Assembly: GCA_964036045.1 (NCBI GenBank)
Contig: OZ038378.1
Coordinates: forward strand, 24,924,001-24,988,000
Source: Eutreptiella sp. 'Long Island Sound 2002'
Lineage: Eukaryota > Protista > Euglenida
DNA: 64,000 nucleotides
Direction of reading: 5' to 3'
Shown here: positions 30,701-36,463 of the stretch, in pieces
How the letters are laid out: every line of letters begins with the position of its first letter
Position numbering within the stretch: position 1 is the first letter of the stretch
Translations under genes and position numbers: made by a program
Notes under the pieces: model-generated
What the model was told of the DNA's origin: nothing
The model's input: only the letters and a program-made list of their open reading frames with translations
The model's database searches: none

Positions 30701-32695
30701 GGATGCCGTCTTCTTCAGTGGCCCAAACGGTTGAATCCCTGAGGCCAGATTGCTCCTTCAGTGGCCGATTGTTTCGGCCCTCCCCCCACGGGTCCCTCAT
30801 GGGCTCACTGGGTCGGCAGCTGTACCCAATCCCACTCCCGCCGTTCCAGTGCCTTGCCTGTGCCCCCCCCCCCCCCACTCATGTGAGCAACATTAAAGTC
30901 CCAATAATTTGACGGAAACAAGACCTAGTGTTGTTGTGACCAGGAGGGGGTTCTGACAAAGCAGCACATGGTCCCAGAAGTTGCGGAAAGAACCCCCACT
31001 GTTGTTCTGACAAGGGCGTTGTTCTCACAAGAGGGGGGGGGGGGGCAGGTGGAACATGCACCCAACGTCTGGCCACGTACGCACCATGCTTCGTTTCTGT
31101 GTGTGACCACGCCCCCTTCCCCTGGAAGCAATCAGTCACTCACCGACACCTTCCCATTTACCTCTGTCCTGCTTTCATTCTGCGACGGTGCTTTTCATTT
31201 ACCACCGAGCTAACTTGCTTCTATTGGCATCCACGTTTTTCGAAAGGGGGCCCTAGGGGGAGGGGGTAGTCCACAAGGGTACAACGGAAAGCTGGTATGC
31301 AGCCCCAGGTCAGATACCAGCGCAGTTTCAGACCGCATCAGACTGCTCAGACTGGCAGACAAACAGCATGTATAGCAACTCCGGCAAGCTGACCCTTTTT
31401 AGCCATAATCTGACGATGGTCGTCACACCAGGCGTCACACCCTCAACAATTTGTAAGCTGTCCAGTATCCAGCGTCCAGCTGACCCTGTTTAGCAGAGCC
31501 ATGCTCCTCATAGGAAGGGGTGGGGAGGTTGGGAGAAAGGGGGGCAAAGTTGGCCCTCGGCGTCTGTGGTGTACCGCCAACCCATTCAGGCAAAAGGTCT
31601 CATGGAAAAGGAGGGGCAGTCTTGTTGAGACCACAATACAGTGTGCACTGCCGTGCTTTGGCGAACACGTTGGAGACGAGAACAGTAACCCTGGACCCCC
31701 TCAAACACATCTCCAACAGTGGTGGCACATGTGGCAGTACTCAACAGCGGCAGTCATGCTAAACCATAAACACTCACCCAGTGTATTAGGCGGCCACTGC
31801 TGGGCAGCACAACGCTGCACTGAAGGGGCTGGTCTGGACTCCTTGAGTAGTCTATGTCTCCTGGGGCCGGAGATGGTCCCAGAGCTGCCGTGGCACCAAG
31901 CCCAAGCTCTGGCGAAGCTCCTAAACACATGATTTCGTTTACTCTGTGCCGTGTGTCCGTATCGGCTGTGCCGTTTCGCCTTCATGGCATACCCCACCAC
32001 ACACACCCTGTGCGTGACGTTCCGTCCTGTTGGTTTGCCACACCCGTCCGTGCACTGTCTGCTGTCAGGGGCGCGCGGCGCGCTGTCCATTCGCCCACTA
32101 GTCCTGCCTGTCCGCATGTGGCTCACCTCAAGGCTCCAGCCGCTTTCCTCGTTTTTGACGGGTCCTCTATTCGTTGGTAGCCGGAATCCCTGTGGGAAGA
32201 CCGTAACTGCTGCTGCTGGCTCATCGTCCGCCCCACCCCCCAAACTTAAGTCCTTCCGATGCACCGGTAAGAGCACGGGGTCAGAGCGAGTGGCTCGCTC
32301 TTTGCCGAACTTCTTCGCATTATTCTTGTGAACCTGAATGACCCCCTTCCCCACAAATAACTATCAAGCCTCCCAAGCGTAATACCCCCCTCACAGACAC
32401 ACAATGACCCCCTCTCCACCGCCCTGGCGGTGCCTCCGTTTGGGCAGTTGGAGGGCCGTTGAGGGCAGTTGAGGGGCAGTGGGAGGGCAGTGGGTGGGCA
32501 GTGAGGGGGCATTGCACTTTCCAGTGGGTCAATCGGCCTCTGGCCCTCAGCCATTGCAACACTAGGCGTTCAGTGGTTGTGGTGCATGCTGCCAAAAGAA
32601 GCGATGTTGTCATGGCGCCGGGGGGGGAGAGGTGTCTCCGTGGGCCAGGGTGCCATATCCCTGCTTCATGACTAGAGTGTTTGCGTCGGGAAGCC

Positions 32696-34543
32696 TCAGC
32701 TGGGGGCCTGACTGCTGGTGGAGTTTGTTGCAGTCTCAACCGCCCTGCGCGCCGCACTCAGCACCGCTTGCAGGACCGCCTCTTCATCCACCTCGTCGCC
32801 CTCCCGCAGCGCAACCGTTGGGGCGTGCAGTAGCCGCCGCGTGCTCGCCCGCACCACCTCCGCATGCCGCGCCGCTGCTCCGGCGCCCAGTTCCGCAGCC
32901 ACCACGTCCTCTGCCCGGGCACGCAGCCGTGTGATGGCCGCGGCGCTGTCAAGCGCCCGCAAGTCCGCCGCACACTGCGCCACGGCGGGCCCGACGACGT
33001 CGCGGGCCACAGCAGCCGCGGCGGTGCGGCGGGCCACCGTGGAGTGCGCGCTTTCCGGGACGGCGTACCTGCCGCCGCCGCTGTACTGACGCAGTGCCGC
33101 GACTTCCGGGAGTATGTCCGGGTTGCGCGCGGCCTTCCCGGCGGCGAGTCCGGCCCGCAGAACAATGCCCAGGCGCGGGCCGCAGGGGGCCGGCATTGCG
33201 AACGCACCGCCGCGGCTGCCAAAAGCAGACGCGAATGGGTCGCCGGACGCCGGGGGTGAAGTCGCGGGCGCAGCCGCCGCGTCAAGGGTGCGCTTTAGCT
33301 GCAGCATCACGTGGGCGTCGCGCGCGGCAAATGGGCGGAACGCCGCTGGATCCTTCCCCGCGAGCCCGACGGCGAGGACGCAGCAGTGCTGCGCCACGGC
33401 CTCCACGCCCGAAACCGGCGTCAGCACCGCGGCCAAGGCCTGCGGGTCCAGGTCGGAGGCAGAATCGCGAATCGCGGCATCGGTGGCGGCGTCGCAGCTG
33501 CCGGGCCGGACGACTCGGGCCTCGTCGTCCGCCCACGCGAGCCACCGCGGATTCCGGCGCCACGCTGCAAACTGCACGGCGATCTGCTCTGCCACATGGC
33601 CCGCGACCGCAGCCCCGGACGTCGGCGCGGCCGTCGCGACGTAGACGTCGAGGCGGGCGCAGTTCGCTAGGACAACGCACTCCTCGACGGGCACGGCCGC
33701 GGTCGCCGAGGCCACGATGACCGCGGCGAAGCGGCGGACGGTGCGGGGCCGCGGTACCCAGCGATCGGCCCCGTCGCCCAGGACCGCATCCTTCCATTCC
33801 CAGCAGTCGTTGCCGGCCCGGCTCCAGATCTGACCCTCTGCCCCCGGCTTCAGCATCGACACCAAATGCACTGTGTCCTGTACGGCCGCGAGCGAGCCCA
33901 CGTGGCCTGCCTCTGGGTTTGCGCCCGAATGCCGTAGGGCGCACCGCGACGGGGTCAGGGAACGCGCGCGCGCCGTCCCCCCCCCCGCGCGCTTCCCAGC
34001 GATGCCACAGAGTGCGACGGCACGGGGCCCGGGCTGCGGTGCAGATACGGCGCGCAGCGCTCTGCTGCACCAGAGGGCCCCGCAGAGGGTCACGAGGCCG
34101 GCCGCAGGCACCAGCCACCCGCTCGGGGCGAAGGAAGTGCTGGAAGGCGGTCCCTGCGGTCGTGGATCCCAACGGAATCGGTTGGTGCATTTCACGCAGT
34201 CCGCGGGGACGCCCCCTGTGGGACGTGTGCAGGGGCTGTGTGGTCGGCTGCCGAGCACGCGCCCACGCGTTGCAGCGCTGGGGCCTGCGAGAAGAGTCAG
34301 GCTCGCGGGTGTGCGGAGGGGGTGGGCCCTGTGCTGCGCGATGGCGGACCGCAGCGGGATCGCGCCTGCACAAAGCGTCGTACCCATGGGGCTGTGGGGG
34401 ACGACCCGAGGGAGGCACAGCACAATGAGTGCGACGACGAAGGCCGTAGCCGGGAGGGGCCACGCGAGGGCGGGGCTTGGTGTGGGCGCACAGTGCTGTG
34501 CGCCGCTTTCGGGGGCGGCGTAGAGAGGCCCGGCGGGCCCCAT
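32696..34543 (-). CDS. Plastid-targeted glutamyl-tRNA reductase (HemA/GluTR)-like protein lacking the NADPH-binding domain, 615 aa, intronless
   Basis: EECVVLANCARLDVY resembles VVLSTCNRTELY. EAVAQHCCVLAVGL resembles DAVSHLMRVASGL. RDAHVMLQLKR resembles GEPQILGQVKK. LRALDSAAAITRLRARAEDV...TRRLLHAPT matches the dimerisation domain. No GAGE motif. First in-frame ATG is 34543 (the track ORF starts at TTG). Confidence 0.82.
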   Translation of the reverse strand: MGPAGPLYAAPESGAQHCAPTPSPALAWPLPATAFVVALIVLCLPRVVPHSPMGTTLCAGAIPLRSAIAQHRAHPLRTPASLTLLAGPSAATRGRVLGSRPHSPCTRPTGGVPADCVKCTNRFRWDPRPQGPPSSTSFAPSGWLVPAAGLVTLCGALWCSRALRAVSAPQPGPRAVALCGIAGKRAGGGTARARSLTPSRCALRHSGANPEAGHVGSLAAVQDTVHLVSMLKPGAEGQIWSRAGNDCWEWKDAVLGDGADRWVPRPRTVRRFAAVIVASATAAVPVEECVVLANCARLDVYVATAAPTSGAAVAGHVAEQIAVQFAAWRRNPRWLAWADDEARVVRPGSCDAATDAAIRDSASDLDPQALAAVLTPVSGVEAVAQHCCVLAVGLAGKDPAAFRPFAARDAHVMLQLKRTLDAAAAPATSPPASGDPFASAFGSRGGAFAMPAPCGPRLGIVLRAGLAAGKAARNPDILPEVAALRQYSGGGRYAVPESAHSTVARRTAAAAVARDVVGPAVAQCAADLRALDSAAAITRLRARAEDVVAAELGAGAAARHAEVVRASTRRLLHAPTVALREGDEVDEEAVLQAVLSAARRAVETATNSTSSQAPS

Positions 34544-34601
34544 CACCGGAGGGTGCCGCCGCAATGGCCCCAAAGTGGCAGAATGTACCCCGTCAAAGGG
34601 C

Positions 34602-34645
34602 CTAAAGTGAGGCGGAGTGCGTAGGGGGTTGGGGGTTGGGGGTCG
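34602..34645 (-). promoter_or_regulatory. Candidate trans-splice (SL) acceptor for the GluTR-like gene
   Basis: C-rich tract CCCCCAACCCCCTACGCACTCCGCCTCACTTTAG ending about 58 nt before the ATG. Confidence 0.45.
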
Positions 34646-36077
34646 GACGCACTGGCGCTCGCTAACTGAGTGCCTACACCTTCTTTAGTGATGATTGCGC
34701 CACATCATGCCATCCACTGGCCCTCCGGTAGCCCGGCACTGGTTGTGCTTGGCGTTGAATGCTGTCCTCCCGCCCCCAGACCGAAAAGCAGGTGCGCAGT
34801 AGGCTCTCGCTCTGTCAGTGCGTCTTTGCCGTGCGCTGTTCACACACCAATTTGCATCCCCCCCTCCTTCCCAGTCGCCTTTGAAGTTCTGTGCCTCTGA
34901 GTGGGTGCAATCCAGTAGCTCTTGGTGGGGGGTTGTGTTACACAGGGCACGTCCACCAAAGGTCCCACCTACGCCTTCGCTTAGCTCCCCGTAATGAGGG
35001 TCCCCCCACTCCTCTGCAGTTTTCCCCTGCTGACTGGCAACGAGGTGTGCTTGCTTTGGTGTACATCTGTGCTGGCCTCGAAGGGGGGCGCAGTACATTG
35101 CACGAGTCACCTGGCAGTCCGTTTTCCGGTACGATGTCCTGAGCAAGTGTGGGCACCCCACACCCCACACCCTCCCTCACTGCAGGTGTGTAGCCCTTCT
35201 TCGGCGACCACAAGCTGTTTAAGTGGGGACCCTGCCTGCCCCCTTGCAGCCTGCAAACCTACGCCCATGGGCAGCAGCAGTTTTGCGCCCACACCGCGGG
35301 GCCGACAACAACATCACGGCTCTTGGGGGCTTTGGGAGGTTCATTGATGCGTCTGCCGCAATCTCCTGGTTCTTGTGAGTGGTCAACAGTTTTTTACTCC
35401 CCATTTATGTGTCGTCGAAATGCTCAGAAGTGAATGGGGTATTTGAACATGCCGCAGAACAACACGTGATCCTCCCCCCCTCCCCTGCACTGGAGCCCCT
35501 GCTTAACACGCCGGTGTGAGAGGCCACAACTACACTGAAACGCTCCCCATGGCGCAGATGTAGTGCACAGGCTCACCCTGCTTCATAGGATCGCCCTTAT
35601 GCATCTTTGTCCTTCCCATTGATTGCTTGTTTGCTGCGCGGTTGCTGCGCCTCTGTGGCACCCTTGGCCTTCTTCATACTGCTTTTGGACGCAATCATGA
35701 TTCCACTGCAACAGTTCGAAAGTCTTTGGGATGCTATGTACAGGATGCATACATCTATGAACAGAAAAGCAACTCATAGTTATATGGGCCTGATTTCGAA
35801 AGCCAAATCAAAACGATTTAGTTGCGGGCGTCATGGTGAGACGACAGCCCTATAATATACTCGCTGTCTACATGCATAAAACTGCCTTCCTTCTCAGTTC
35901 CTGTCGGTAAAACCCCGGCACTCATTCGGCCATACAGTTGCTGAGTCCTAGTCTATGGCGTGTGTGTAGTGTGTTGGCTCAAAAGGAAGGTTGGCTGTGT
36001 ATGACTGGCACTGTGGTTTGTGGGCAGTAATGTTGGCTGTAGCTTGCTGAGGGCTGTCGGCCCAAAAGATAGGTTTT

Positions 36078-36150
36078 TGGCTACGTGCTGCAGCGGCAGT
36101 GCAGCTGGCCGCTACCCTGAAGTCGCCGGTTCGAATCCCCGAGAGGGGAA
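36078..36150 (+). pseudogene. tRNA-derived SINE-like head
   Basis: Perfect B-box GGTTCGAATCCC with a degenerate A-box (CGTGCTGCAGCGG); no canonical cloverleaf. Confidence 0.55.
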
Positions 36151-36382
36151 TACGAGGAGGAGATGCGGCTCCCGTCGGCCGGCGGTGCCAGTGGCGGGGC
36201 GCGCTGCTGCAGGTATGCGGTGCCTGGTGCCTTGTTTTTCTGCATGTAACGTATCATGTCATAGACTGAGTTGACAAAAACTACGAGGACGAGACACGCC
36301 ACCCATCCACCGGCGGTACTGATGGTGGAGGGGGGTGCTGAAGGGGGCGGTGGCGGGGACCTCGCCAATGGGCCCCTAGACG

Positions 36383-36463
36383 GACGGACGAACCGGGGCT
36401 TGAACCCCTGACGACGACGAGCGCCAGCCCATGGCACATACCACTAGACCGACCATGCCTCTT
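36383..36463 (-). pseudogene. tRNA-derived head (A-box GGTCTAGTGGTATG, B-box GGTTCAAGCCC)
   Basis: D-arm region resembles tRNA-Pro/Gly; T-loop present; a homologue sits at 269-335. Confidence 0.65.

Follow-up and report, generated by a model that had tools for sequence, protein, structure and literature searches.

A predicted plastid protein derived from glutamyl-tRNA reductase but lacking its NADPH-binding domain in a euglenid alga, and its relatives in other algae

Glutamyl-tRNA reductase (GluTR, HemA, EC 1.2.1.70) is the rate-limiting and heavily regulated first enzyme of chlorophyll and haem synthesis, and it competes with translation for the plastid Glu-tRNA. It consists of an N-terminal catalytic domain, a central NADPH-binding Rossmann domain and a C-terminal helical dimerisation domain. 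What, then, is to be made of a gene that apparently encodes the first and the last of these domains but not the one in between? Such a gene was noticed in a 64,000-nucleotide stretch of the genome of Eutreptiella sp. 'Long Island Sound 2002' (GCA_964036045.1, contig OZ038378.1, positions 24,924,001 to 24,988,000), referred to here as the window, to which all coordinates below refer. The original prediction described it as a plastid-targeted GluTR-like protein with the NADPH domain deleted, and proposed that it is a pseudo-enzyme regulating tetrapyrrole synthesis. Is the gene real, is the domain truly missing, and has the remaining active site decayed? In short, the observation holds in full, whereas the interpretation is only partly supported.

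An intact gene with two of the three GluTR domains

The gene lies on the minus strand at 32696-34543 (615 codons plus stop, starting from the ATG at 34543), in an open frame that extends upstream to a TTG at 34573 (625 aa) and is the longest in the window. In the mature part, GC3 (0.76-0.90) exceeds GC2 (0.54-0.66). ORF length alone is weak evidence, since this 69% GC stretch also carries chance ORFs of up to 393 aa in other frames, but homology settles the matter: the protein shares 46% identity over 386 residues (E 3e-82) with P0023, a relative encoded on a transcript-derived contig, and 41% over 391 residues (E 4e-70) with a protein of the prasinophyte Cymbomonas. The possibility of an artefact or a pseudogene (a decaying hemA copy, a mis-assembly, or a gene whose NADPH-domain exon was missed) could draw on the GC-rich context, on the high-copy repeats that flank the gene and on the thin RNA support for this exact locus. 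Against it, the ORF is colinear with its relatives across the whole mature region without frame breaks, the linker between the two domains is continuous coding sequence, and genomic DNA contigs of three sequencing runs are colinear over 31400-34913 with no joints inside the ORF. Together with the occurrence of the same architecture in hundreds of other sequences, some of them transcript-derived (see below), this largely refutes that explanation, which we consider very improbable. The three runs behave as genomic DNA and hence say nothing about splicing or spliced-leader addition, and no reads cover the 5' end. Expression evidence for this gene is weak: three 151-nt contigs of an estuary metatranscriptome, without differing letters, cover the 3' end of the ORF and its downstream flank (32194-32814), which is a weak hint of a transcript with a 3' UTR of about 0.5 kb, given that DNA may be present in that library. 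An Rfam search found nothing in the window.

Domain searches with Pfam models placed GlutR_dimer (PF00745) on ORF residues 523-604 with 30-31.5 bits (cut-off 22.9) and gave a weak GlutR_N match on residues 293-329 (13 bits, below the cut-off of 27), while there was no Shikimate_DH (PF01488) hit either in this protein or in any of 60 relatives; a Rossmann hit of this kind had been named in advance as one of the results that would overturn the prediction. Scores with the curated equivalog models for whole GluTR (TIGR01035, NF000744) lie far below their cut-offs (28.2 against 209.55 and 32.5 against 429). A phmmer search of PDB sequences with the protein gave no GluTR hit, and neither did a first, small profile; only a profile of 60 family sequences reached Arabidopsis GluTR1 (4n7r_A, E 2.6e-6), aligning to it in three colinear pieces, namely the Cys motif, the QxK...GKxxR segment and the dimerisation domain with its LHxP motif. 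Between the last two pieces there are 42 profile positions, against 193 residues in GluTR, so that the whole NADPH-binding domain and most of the long spinal helix are missing. When the family was aligned by hhalign to E. coli HemA alone, only the dimerisation domain was matched, at 31% probability. A GxGxx[GA] pattern, as expected of a Rossmann fold, occurs in only 6 of 154 family sequences.

The predicted structure is in agreement with this. A single-sequence AlphaFold model was poor (pLDDT 45.5), although the helices of the dimerisation-type domain were modelled confidently even without an alignment, whereas the AF2 model built on 60 relatives (pLDDT 91.5, pTM 0.90) has only helices after residue 273 and no beta-alpha-beta domain. 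GluTR chains are its only strong structural matches (Z 18.7, 18.6, 18.5 and 15.9 over 252-262 residues, the highest to 5yjl_A; next best 5.3), and GluTR structures in the PDB include 1gpj, 4n7r, 5che and 5yjl. In the ESM Atlas, a feature search returned nothing and a fold search returned only canonical three-domain GluTR clusters.

Along the gene, the GluTR-like N-terminal (catalytic-type) domain occupies 33083-33880, and GlutR_N is detected in 37 of 60 family members (best E 3.4e-9). It contains, near its start, a WxWKD motif (33788-33802, the beginning of WxWKDxVLGDG) that is specific to the family; the NCAR motif (33653-33664), which aligns to the STCNR of Arabidopsis GluTR and is the counterpart of TCNR, with the nucleophile Cys and the glutamate-binding Arg; the RDAH motif (33311-33322), counterpart of GExQ, since the profile residues that follow it (IllQLKR) align to ILAQVKQ of GluTR; and, at the end of the domain, GKAAR (33125-33139), counterpart of GKRVR. 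A short linker of about 33 residues (33008-33106, EVAALRQYSGGGRY...AAAV) stands in the place of the NADPH-binding domain, followed by the helical domain of the dimerisation type (32762-33007). The motifs named in the original prediction are all present at these places, including the replacement of GLDS by GLAG and of GExQI by RDAHV.

The first 222 or so residues (33878-34543) form a presequence that is not conserved in relatives, as BLASTP homology to P0023 and to the Cymbomonas protein begins only at residues 223-225. It was predicted to be a euglenid class I plastid signal, which in E. gracilis is defined as a signal peptide at residues 9-60 plus a stop-transfer signal at 97-130 (bioRxiv 10.1101/573709). 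A first, signal-peptide-like hydrophobic segment (34406-34474, containing AFVVALIVLCL) peaks at residues 31-44 on the Kyte-Doolittle scale, within the E. gracilis range, although the region before the peak has no Lys or Arg, which is atypical. It is followed by a transit-peptide-like region (34121-34405, residues 47-141) with 2% Asp/Glu, 12% Lys/Arg, 20% Ser/Thr and 16% Pro, compared with 10% Asp/Glu in the mature part. A second hydrophobic segment (34058-34120, GWLVPAAGLVTLCGALW, then Arg), a candidate stop-transfer signal, peaks at residues 148-154, outside the range reported for E. gracilis and about 113 residues from the first peak. P0023 has the same layout, with peaks at 14-27 and 121-126, about 103 residues apart, and its contig lacks a spliced leader at the 5' end. 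The presequence is class-I-like in this sense, and the plastid location remains a prediction.

A two-domain family in several groups of algae

Is this a deletion that happened once in a euglenid? The loss is not local to this lineage. An exhaustive profile search found 308 cluster representatives with the same two-domain layout at E<=1e-3 (117 at E<=1e-30). MAFFT misplaced exon fragments of a diatom-like gene in two attempts, and the resulting profile was checked before that search. Named members come from diatoms, Symbiodiniaceae, a green-plastid dinoflagellate (the MGD dinoflagellate) and Cymbomonas, and another carries a euglenid-type presequence, whereas a motif scan of about 186,000 prokaryotic genomes found none. 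Members derived from transcripts exist, namely MMETSP transcripts, a Seminavis 'expressed unknown protein' and the P0023 contig. Furthermore, the same junction between the two domains appears in a spliced diatom-like gene whose 85-nt intron leaves no room for a hidden exon, and in the diatom-like locus L001 the His codon of RDAH is split by an intron and restored by splicing. Diatom copies carry predicted signal peptides followed by an Ala/Ser-Phe/Trp junction.

The family, as defined here, is characterised by the motifs WxWK[DE]xxLGDG, [NT]CAR, FRPxSSRDAH, QLKR, GKAAR and LLHxP in this order, present in the window protein (which has FRPFAA where the family consensus has FRPFSS), and by the short spacing between GKxxR and LLHxP, which is 102 residues in the window protein and 73-119 in 25 of the 26 members where both motifs were found (one outlier at 146). 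The nucleophile Cys and the adjacent Arg are invariant (225/225 each), and so are the Lys of WxWKD (209/209, with the second Trp in 207/209), a Gln (229/229), the Gly and Arg of GKxxR (219/219 each) and the His of LLHxP (166/166). In the motif that replaces GExQ, the Glu position is Asp in 220/232 and the Gln position is His in 227/228, and it is preceded by a conserved insertion of roughly a dozen residues, whereas the Ser position of GLDS is variable (GLA-x). The equivalent of the conserved His of GluTR, which the original prediction counted as kept, is only moderately conserved (His in 172 of 233, otherwise mainly Tyr or Arg). In the databases examined, members are labelled only 'hypothetical', 'domain-containing' or, wrongly, 'uidB', and full-text literature searches on GluTR-like, HemA-like or truncated GluTR proteins, on the Pfam names and on diatom and dinoflagellate GluTR found no description of the family. 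What is known is the parent enzyme; what appears to be new is a conserved algal family that retains its catalytic-type and dimerisation domains without the NADPH-binding one.

The retained site: enzyme or regulator?

The analysis shows an intact gene that belongs to a conserved family of eukaryotic algae derived from GluTR, which has kept the catalytic-type N-domain and the C-terminal dimerisation domain and has lost the whole NADPH-binding domain; plastid targeting is predicted, and anything on dimerisation, substrate binding, catalysis or regulation is inferred from sequence and predicted structure alone. That the protein cannot reduce Glu-tRNA on its own, as originally proposed, is a sound inference from the missing domain. 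That it is a dead pseudo-enzyme is not supported, and even the term pseudo-enzyme is doubtful, because an invariant nucleophile and a nearly invariant replacement motif are the pattern expected of a site still in use, most likely for Glu-tRNA binding and thioester chemistry, and not of a decayed one.

GluTR reportedly forms a Cys-thioester with the glutamyl moiety and acts as an esterase in the absence of NADPH (Moser et al. 1999 and 2001; Schauer et al. 2002). By analogy, the protein would dimerise in the plastid through its C-terminal helices and bind Glu-tRNA(Glu) in the retained pocket (the invariant Cys and Arg, Glu/Asp after the Arg, and GKxxR), and the Cys would attack the aminoacyl ester to form a glutamyl-thioester. 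With no hydride donor, the intermediate would be either hydrolysed (a Glu-tRNA esterase) or passed to another acceptor, and the family-specific Asp-x-His that replaces Glu-x-Gln would take over the chemistry. This is the explanation we favour, although only with even confidence. Three pocket positions of GluTR have changed (Ser of GLDS variable, Glu to Asp, Gln to His) and the insertion sits next to the pocket, so the ligand may no longer be Glu-tRNA; the counterpart of the conserved His is His in only 74%; and an invariant Cys could serve binding, redox sensing or structure rather than catalysis.

The alternative put forward originally, that of a non-catalytic regulator, remains possible but seems less likely. 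In this view, the protein would bind Glu-tRNA, glutamate or haem, or heterodimerise with true GluTR through the shared dimerisation domain, tuning ALA synthesis without turning over a substrate. The loss of the hydride-donor domain, the retention of a dimerisation domain above the Pfam cut-off and the changes in several glutamate-pocket residues speak for it, and a partner plausibly exists, since Euglena, like other photosynthetic eukaryotes, has a canonical GluTR (called GTR) and the C5 pathway (PMC5654406). However, the complete invariance of the Cys and the near invariance of the new Asp-x-His over 225 or more sequences at 25-48% pairwise identity is unusual for a site that no longer does chemistry, and the dimerisation domain is highly diverged from that of GluTR (only 11 of 60 members reach Pfam significance, besides the 31% probability with E. 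coli HemA), which does not favour a conserved hetero-interface. A split reductase is a further candidate, in which the two-domain protein would work with a separately encoded NAD(P)H-binding subunit and still make glutamate-1-semialdehyde or reduce a related acyl-tRNA. The catalytic pocket is retained and the insertion near it could be a docking surface, but no partner was identified, no fused or extra domain was seen in 10 long full-length members or in the 60 aligned ones, the Gln of GExQ has changed to His, and the activity would be redundant with the canonical GluTR that co-exists in Euglena. We regard it as very unlikely.

Both outcomes, enzyme and regulator, have parallels among truncated paralogues of tRNA-handling enzymes, such as GluQRS/YadB (a GluRS core without the anticodon-binding domain, with a different catalytic job) and HisZ (a HisRS paralogue acting as a regulatory subunit), in which a paralogue of an enzyme handling an aminoacyl-tRNA or amino acid loses one domain and is kept under selection for another role. 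Their folds and chemistry are unrelated to those of the present protein, and the analogy implies no homology. If the regulator reading were right, the functional neighbourhood would be that of the post-translational regulators of plant GluTR (FLU, the GluTR-binding protein GBP and TTP1), plastid proteins that act on the ALA-forming step but have no sequence or fold relation to this protein and bind GluTR rather than being derived from it (4n7r and 5che are complexes of GluTR with such partners).

A second, conserved and predicted plastid-targeted protein that keeps the nucleophile and the substrate pocket of GluTR, albeit with the changes mentioned, but cannot reduce is an obvious candidate for an unknown enzyme or regulator at this step, and it occurs in diatoms and dinoflagellates, which are ecologically dominant and genetically tractable. 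Under the mechanism favoured above, the protein would draw on or sense the plastid Glu-tRNA pool shared by translation and chlorophyll/haem synthesis. The most far-reaching possibility, which we hold only tentatively and consider less likely than not, is that the family is a new class of tRNA-dependent enzyme in algal plastids, a GluTR-derived glutamyl-tRNA thioester-forming hydrolase or transferase with a putative Cys/Asp/His site, which would either drain or proof-read the plastid Glu-tRNA pool or transfer the glutamyl group to an unknown acceptor. Because the family is found in diatoms, dinoflagellates, euglenids and a prasinophyte, this would add an unrecognised control point or branch at the entry to chlorophyll and haem synthesis in major marine primary producers.

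The coding sequence and its genomic surroundings

The minus strand of the window carries one open reading frame running from a TTG at 34573 to the stop codon at 32696-32698, whose first ATG, at 34543, gives 615 codons, which is the same protein held by a public gene call (P0001). This ORF is the longest in the 64-kb window, although its length alone proves little, since the stretch has 69% GC and other frames carry chance ORFs of up to 393 aa. That it is coding is shown instead by two other features, i.e., the third-position GC of the mature part (0.76-0.90, against 0.54-0.66 at second positions) and the existence of strong relatives elsewhere (see below). Genomic contigs from three sequencing runs of the source organism cover 31400-34913 colinearly and at uniform depth, with no joints in the ORF. 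In contrast, the stretches just upstream of the gene (34740-35073 and 35575-36400) are high-copy repeats, where the summed contig depth reaches thousands to tens of thousands (against about 10-23 over the gene), with many variant copies and loose ends.

Regarding expression, three exact 151-nt contigs of an estuary metatranscriptome lie on 32194-32344, 32532-32682 and 32664-32814, that is, on the 3' end of the ORF and downstream of it, with nothing on the rest of the ORF. This pattern fits a 3'-biased mRNA signal, but DNA may be present in the library, and the evidence is therefore weak. The identity of these contigs to the window also suggests that the same organism, or a very close strain, lives in that estuary. 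The putative 3' UTR contains, about 200 nt downstream of the stop codon (32442-32511), a tandem array of an 11-nt unit (GGGCAGTGGGA, about 6.5 copies). On the other side of the gene, a pyrimidine-rich tract on the minus strand (34602-34650), ending in ...CTCACTTTAG, lies about 60 nt upstream of the ATG and, by inference only, could be the spliced-leader acceptor site.

Domain architecture and predicted fold

Pfam scanning of the protein detects GlutR_dimer near the C-terminus above its cut-off (30 bits against 22.9) and a weak GlutR_N match (13 bits) around the Cys motif, but no Shikimate_DH/Rossmann domain, while the scores against the NCBIfam GluTR equivalogs are far below their cut-offs. 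A profile built from 60 relatives aligns to the solved structure of Arabidopsis GluTR1 (4n7r_A, E 2.6e-6) in three colinear pieces, in which ieEcavLSnCaR of the family matches IEEAAVLSTCNR, IllQLKR...GKaaRn matches ILAQVKQ...GKRVRTET, and the C-terminal ...LHePtmeLR matches ...LHGPMQHLR. Between the second and the third pieces the family has 42 profile positions where GluTR has 193 residues, a difference that is the size of the NADPH domain plus part of the spinal helix.

Using the 60-sequence alignment, AlphaFold gives a confident model (pLDDT 91.5, pTM 0.90) with a mixed alpha/beta N-domain (residues 8-273 of the mature part) followed only by helices (285-318, 320-345, 347-366 and 373-397). 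The seven best PDB matches of this model in Foldseek are all GluTR chains, the next hits having a probability of 0.25 or less, and VIA-align gives Z scores of 18.7, 18.6 and 18.5 to the Arabidopsis structures and of 15.9 to M. kandleri GluTR, over 252-262 residues, whereas the next best Z is 5.3. Its neighbours in the ESM Atlas are all three-domain GluTR clusters. Hence, the original prediction, which described a GluTR-like N-terminal domain joined to the dimerisation domain by a short linker in place of the NADPH domain, is confirmed in every structural point.

A family of two-domain proteins in eukaryotic algae

The absence of the NADPH domain is not a one-off deletion. A word-index search first retrieved only two relatives, both from metagenomes, whose diatom-like contigs (L001, 353-2147, and L002, 182-2008) show a gene with two short GT-AG introns. 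Splicing of the first one (114 nt) restores the His of the RDAH motif from a split codon, and the second one, of 85 nt, lies in the linker and is followed by an exon encoding the dimerisation-type domain, so that there is no room for a hidden Rossmann exon. The corresponding database proteins (P0002 and P0003) are mis-predicted, since the public gene calls read through the first intron and stop inside the second, and the dimerisation-domain exon was called as a separate 81-aa gene. A small profile built from these sequences was then run against 1.84 billion cluster representatives, of which 308 scored at E<=1e-3, 237 at E<=1e-10 and 117 at E<=1e-30; the 150 that were listed are 119-648 residues long. 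Among the 154 family sequences collected at this point (two of them cluster members), none has TCNR, while 135 have [NT]C[AN]R and 125 have RD[AS]H. Where both motifs could be located, GKxxR and LLHxP lie 73-119 residues apart in 25 of 26 cases, with one outlier at 146. Of 60 near full-length members, 37 hit GlutR_N, 11 hit GlutR_dimer and none hit Shikimate_DH, and ten long members scanned in full show no extra domain.

The members with a name include the diatoms Cyclotella cryptica, Thalassiosira exigua, Detonula confervacea, Chaetoceros neogracilis, Cylindrotheca closterium, Seminavis robusta (as 'expressed unknown protein') and Fragilariopsis cylindrus, the Symbiodiniaceae Symbiodinium natans, Cladocopium goreaui and Effrenium voratum, the green-plastid dinoflagellate MGD and the prasinophyte Cymbomonas tetramitiformis. 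The S. natans protein (P0039, CAE7391523.1) is named 'uidB' in NCBI and UniRef, a name with no support from its sequence, which has the GluTR-like two-domain layout. Another member, P0023, from a 1.7-kb contig of a JGI sample, is 46% identical to the window protein over 386 residues and has a euglenid-type presequence with two hydrophobic segments. Family members of other species come from transcriptome assemblies. A quick maximum-likelihood tree splits the family into two well-supported groups, one of 12 sequences (SH-aLRT 100), holding the window protein, P0023, Cymbomonas, MGD and the Symbiodiniaceae, and another of 48 sequences, holding the diatoms. This is compatible with the euglenid gene having come from the green plastid donor, but does not prove it, since the euglenid rows are not resolved as sister to Cymbomonas. 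In prokaryotes, a scan with the most conserved motif of one genome for each of 185,579 species found no relative, although this test is pattern-based and of limited sensitivity.

Conservation, predicted targeting and possible function

The alignment of 239 family sequences to the family profile reveals which positions have been retained. The counterpart of the GluTR nucleophile Cys is Cys in 225/225 and the Arg two residues later is Arg in 225/225, while the residue after that Arg plus one is Glu or Asp in 215/225. The counterpart of GluTR's conserved His is His in 172/233 (otherwise Tyr or Arg), and the Ser position of GLDS is variable. In turn, the Glu of GExQ is replaced by Asp in 220/232 and its Gln by His in 227/228. 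In the QLKR segment, Gln is found in 229/229 and Lys in 226/229; the Gly and the Arg of GKxxR are present in 219/219 each, and the His of LLHxP, in the dimerisation domain, in 166/166. To these positions the family adds its own elements, i.e., WxWKDxVLGDG near the N-terminus (Lys 209/209) and a conserved insertion ending in FRPxSS just before RDAH (Pro 233/233). This is the signature of a pocket that has been remodelled and then frozen, not of a decaying one.

Concerning the targeting, the window protein has hydrophobic peaks at residues 31-44 and 148-154, separated by a region with 2% acidic, 12% basic, 20% Ser/Thr and 16% Pro residues, and its homology to relatives starts at about residue 223. 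In E. gracilis class I preproteins, the signal peptide has been placed at residues 9-60 and the stop-transfer signal at 97-130 (10.1101/573709). P0023 fits this layout, whereas in the window protein the second segment lies further along, so its assignment to class I is likely but not clean. Diatom members begin with signal peptides followed by junctions such as GNA-F, CSA-F and VEA-FAP, which resemble the diatom plastid-import motif, and Cymbomonas has an N-terminal extension rich in Ser, Thr and Arg. A plastid location is thus the common prediction across lineages, although it rests on sequence alone.

In canonical GluTR, the Cys reportedly attacks Glu-tRNA to give an enzyme-bound thioester, from which hydride supplied by the NADPH domain releases glutamate-1-semialdehyde, and in the absence of NADPH the enzyme is reported to act as an esterase (Moser et al. 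1999 and 2001; Schauer et al. 2002). While the architecture, the conservation pattern and the predicted targeting of the family follow directly from our analysis, any statement about its binding, its chemistry or its role is inferred. The protein is inferred to be unable to reduce by itself. With the nucleophile, the carboxylate-binding Arg and the GKxxR segment all invariant, the most likely reading is that it would still bind Glu-tRNA and form the thioester, which would then be resolved by water or by another acceptor, with the new Asp-x-His taking part, but we consider such a chemically active site only about as likely as not. The interpretation in the original prediction is partly supported, but its pseudo-enzyme reading is doubtful. 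A purely regulatory role, by sequestering tRNA, by sensing or by heterodimerising with GluTR (canonical hemA is present in Euglena, PMC5654406, so a partner plausibly exists), remains a serious rival, albeit a less likely one. A split reductase appears improbable, and a small remainder is left for something else.

Databases carry the members of this family only under automatic or wrong names, and searches of full-text literature returned no paper on it, which does not exclude its coverage in journals beyond those searched. What was already known is the GluTR fold; what appears to be new is a version of it without the NADPH domain, and its interest is fairly high because the hypothesis is sharp and testable in tractable diatoms. 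Lacking a defining domain and departing from GluTR in two pocket motifs, the protein is not a GluTR in the enzymatic sense, but belongs to a distinct, ancient paralogue family within the GluTR fold.
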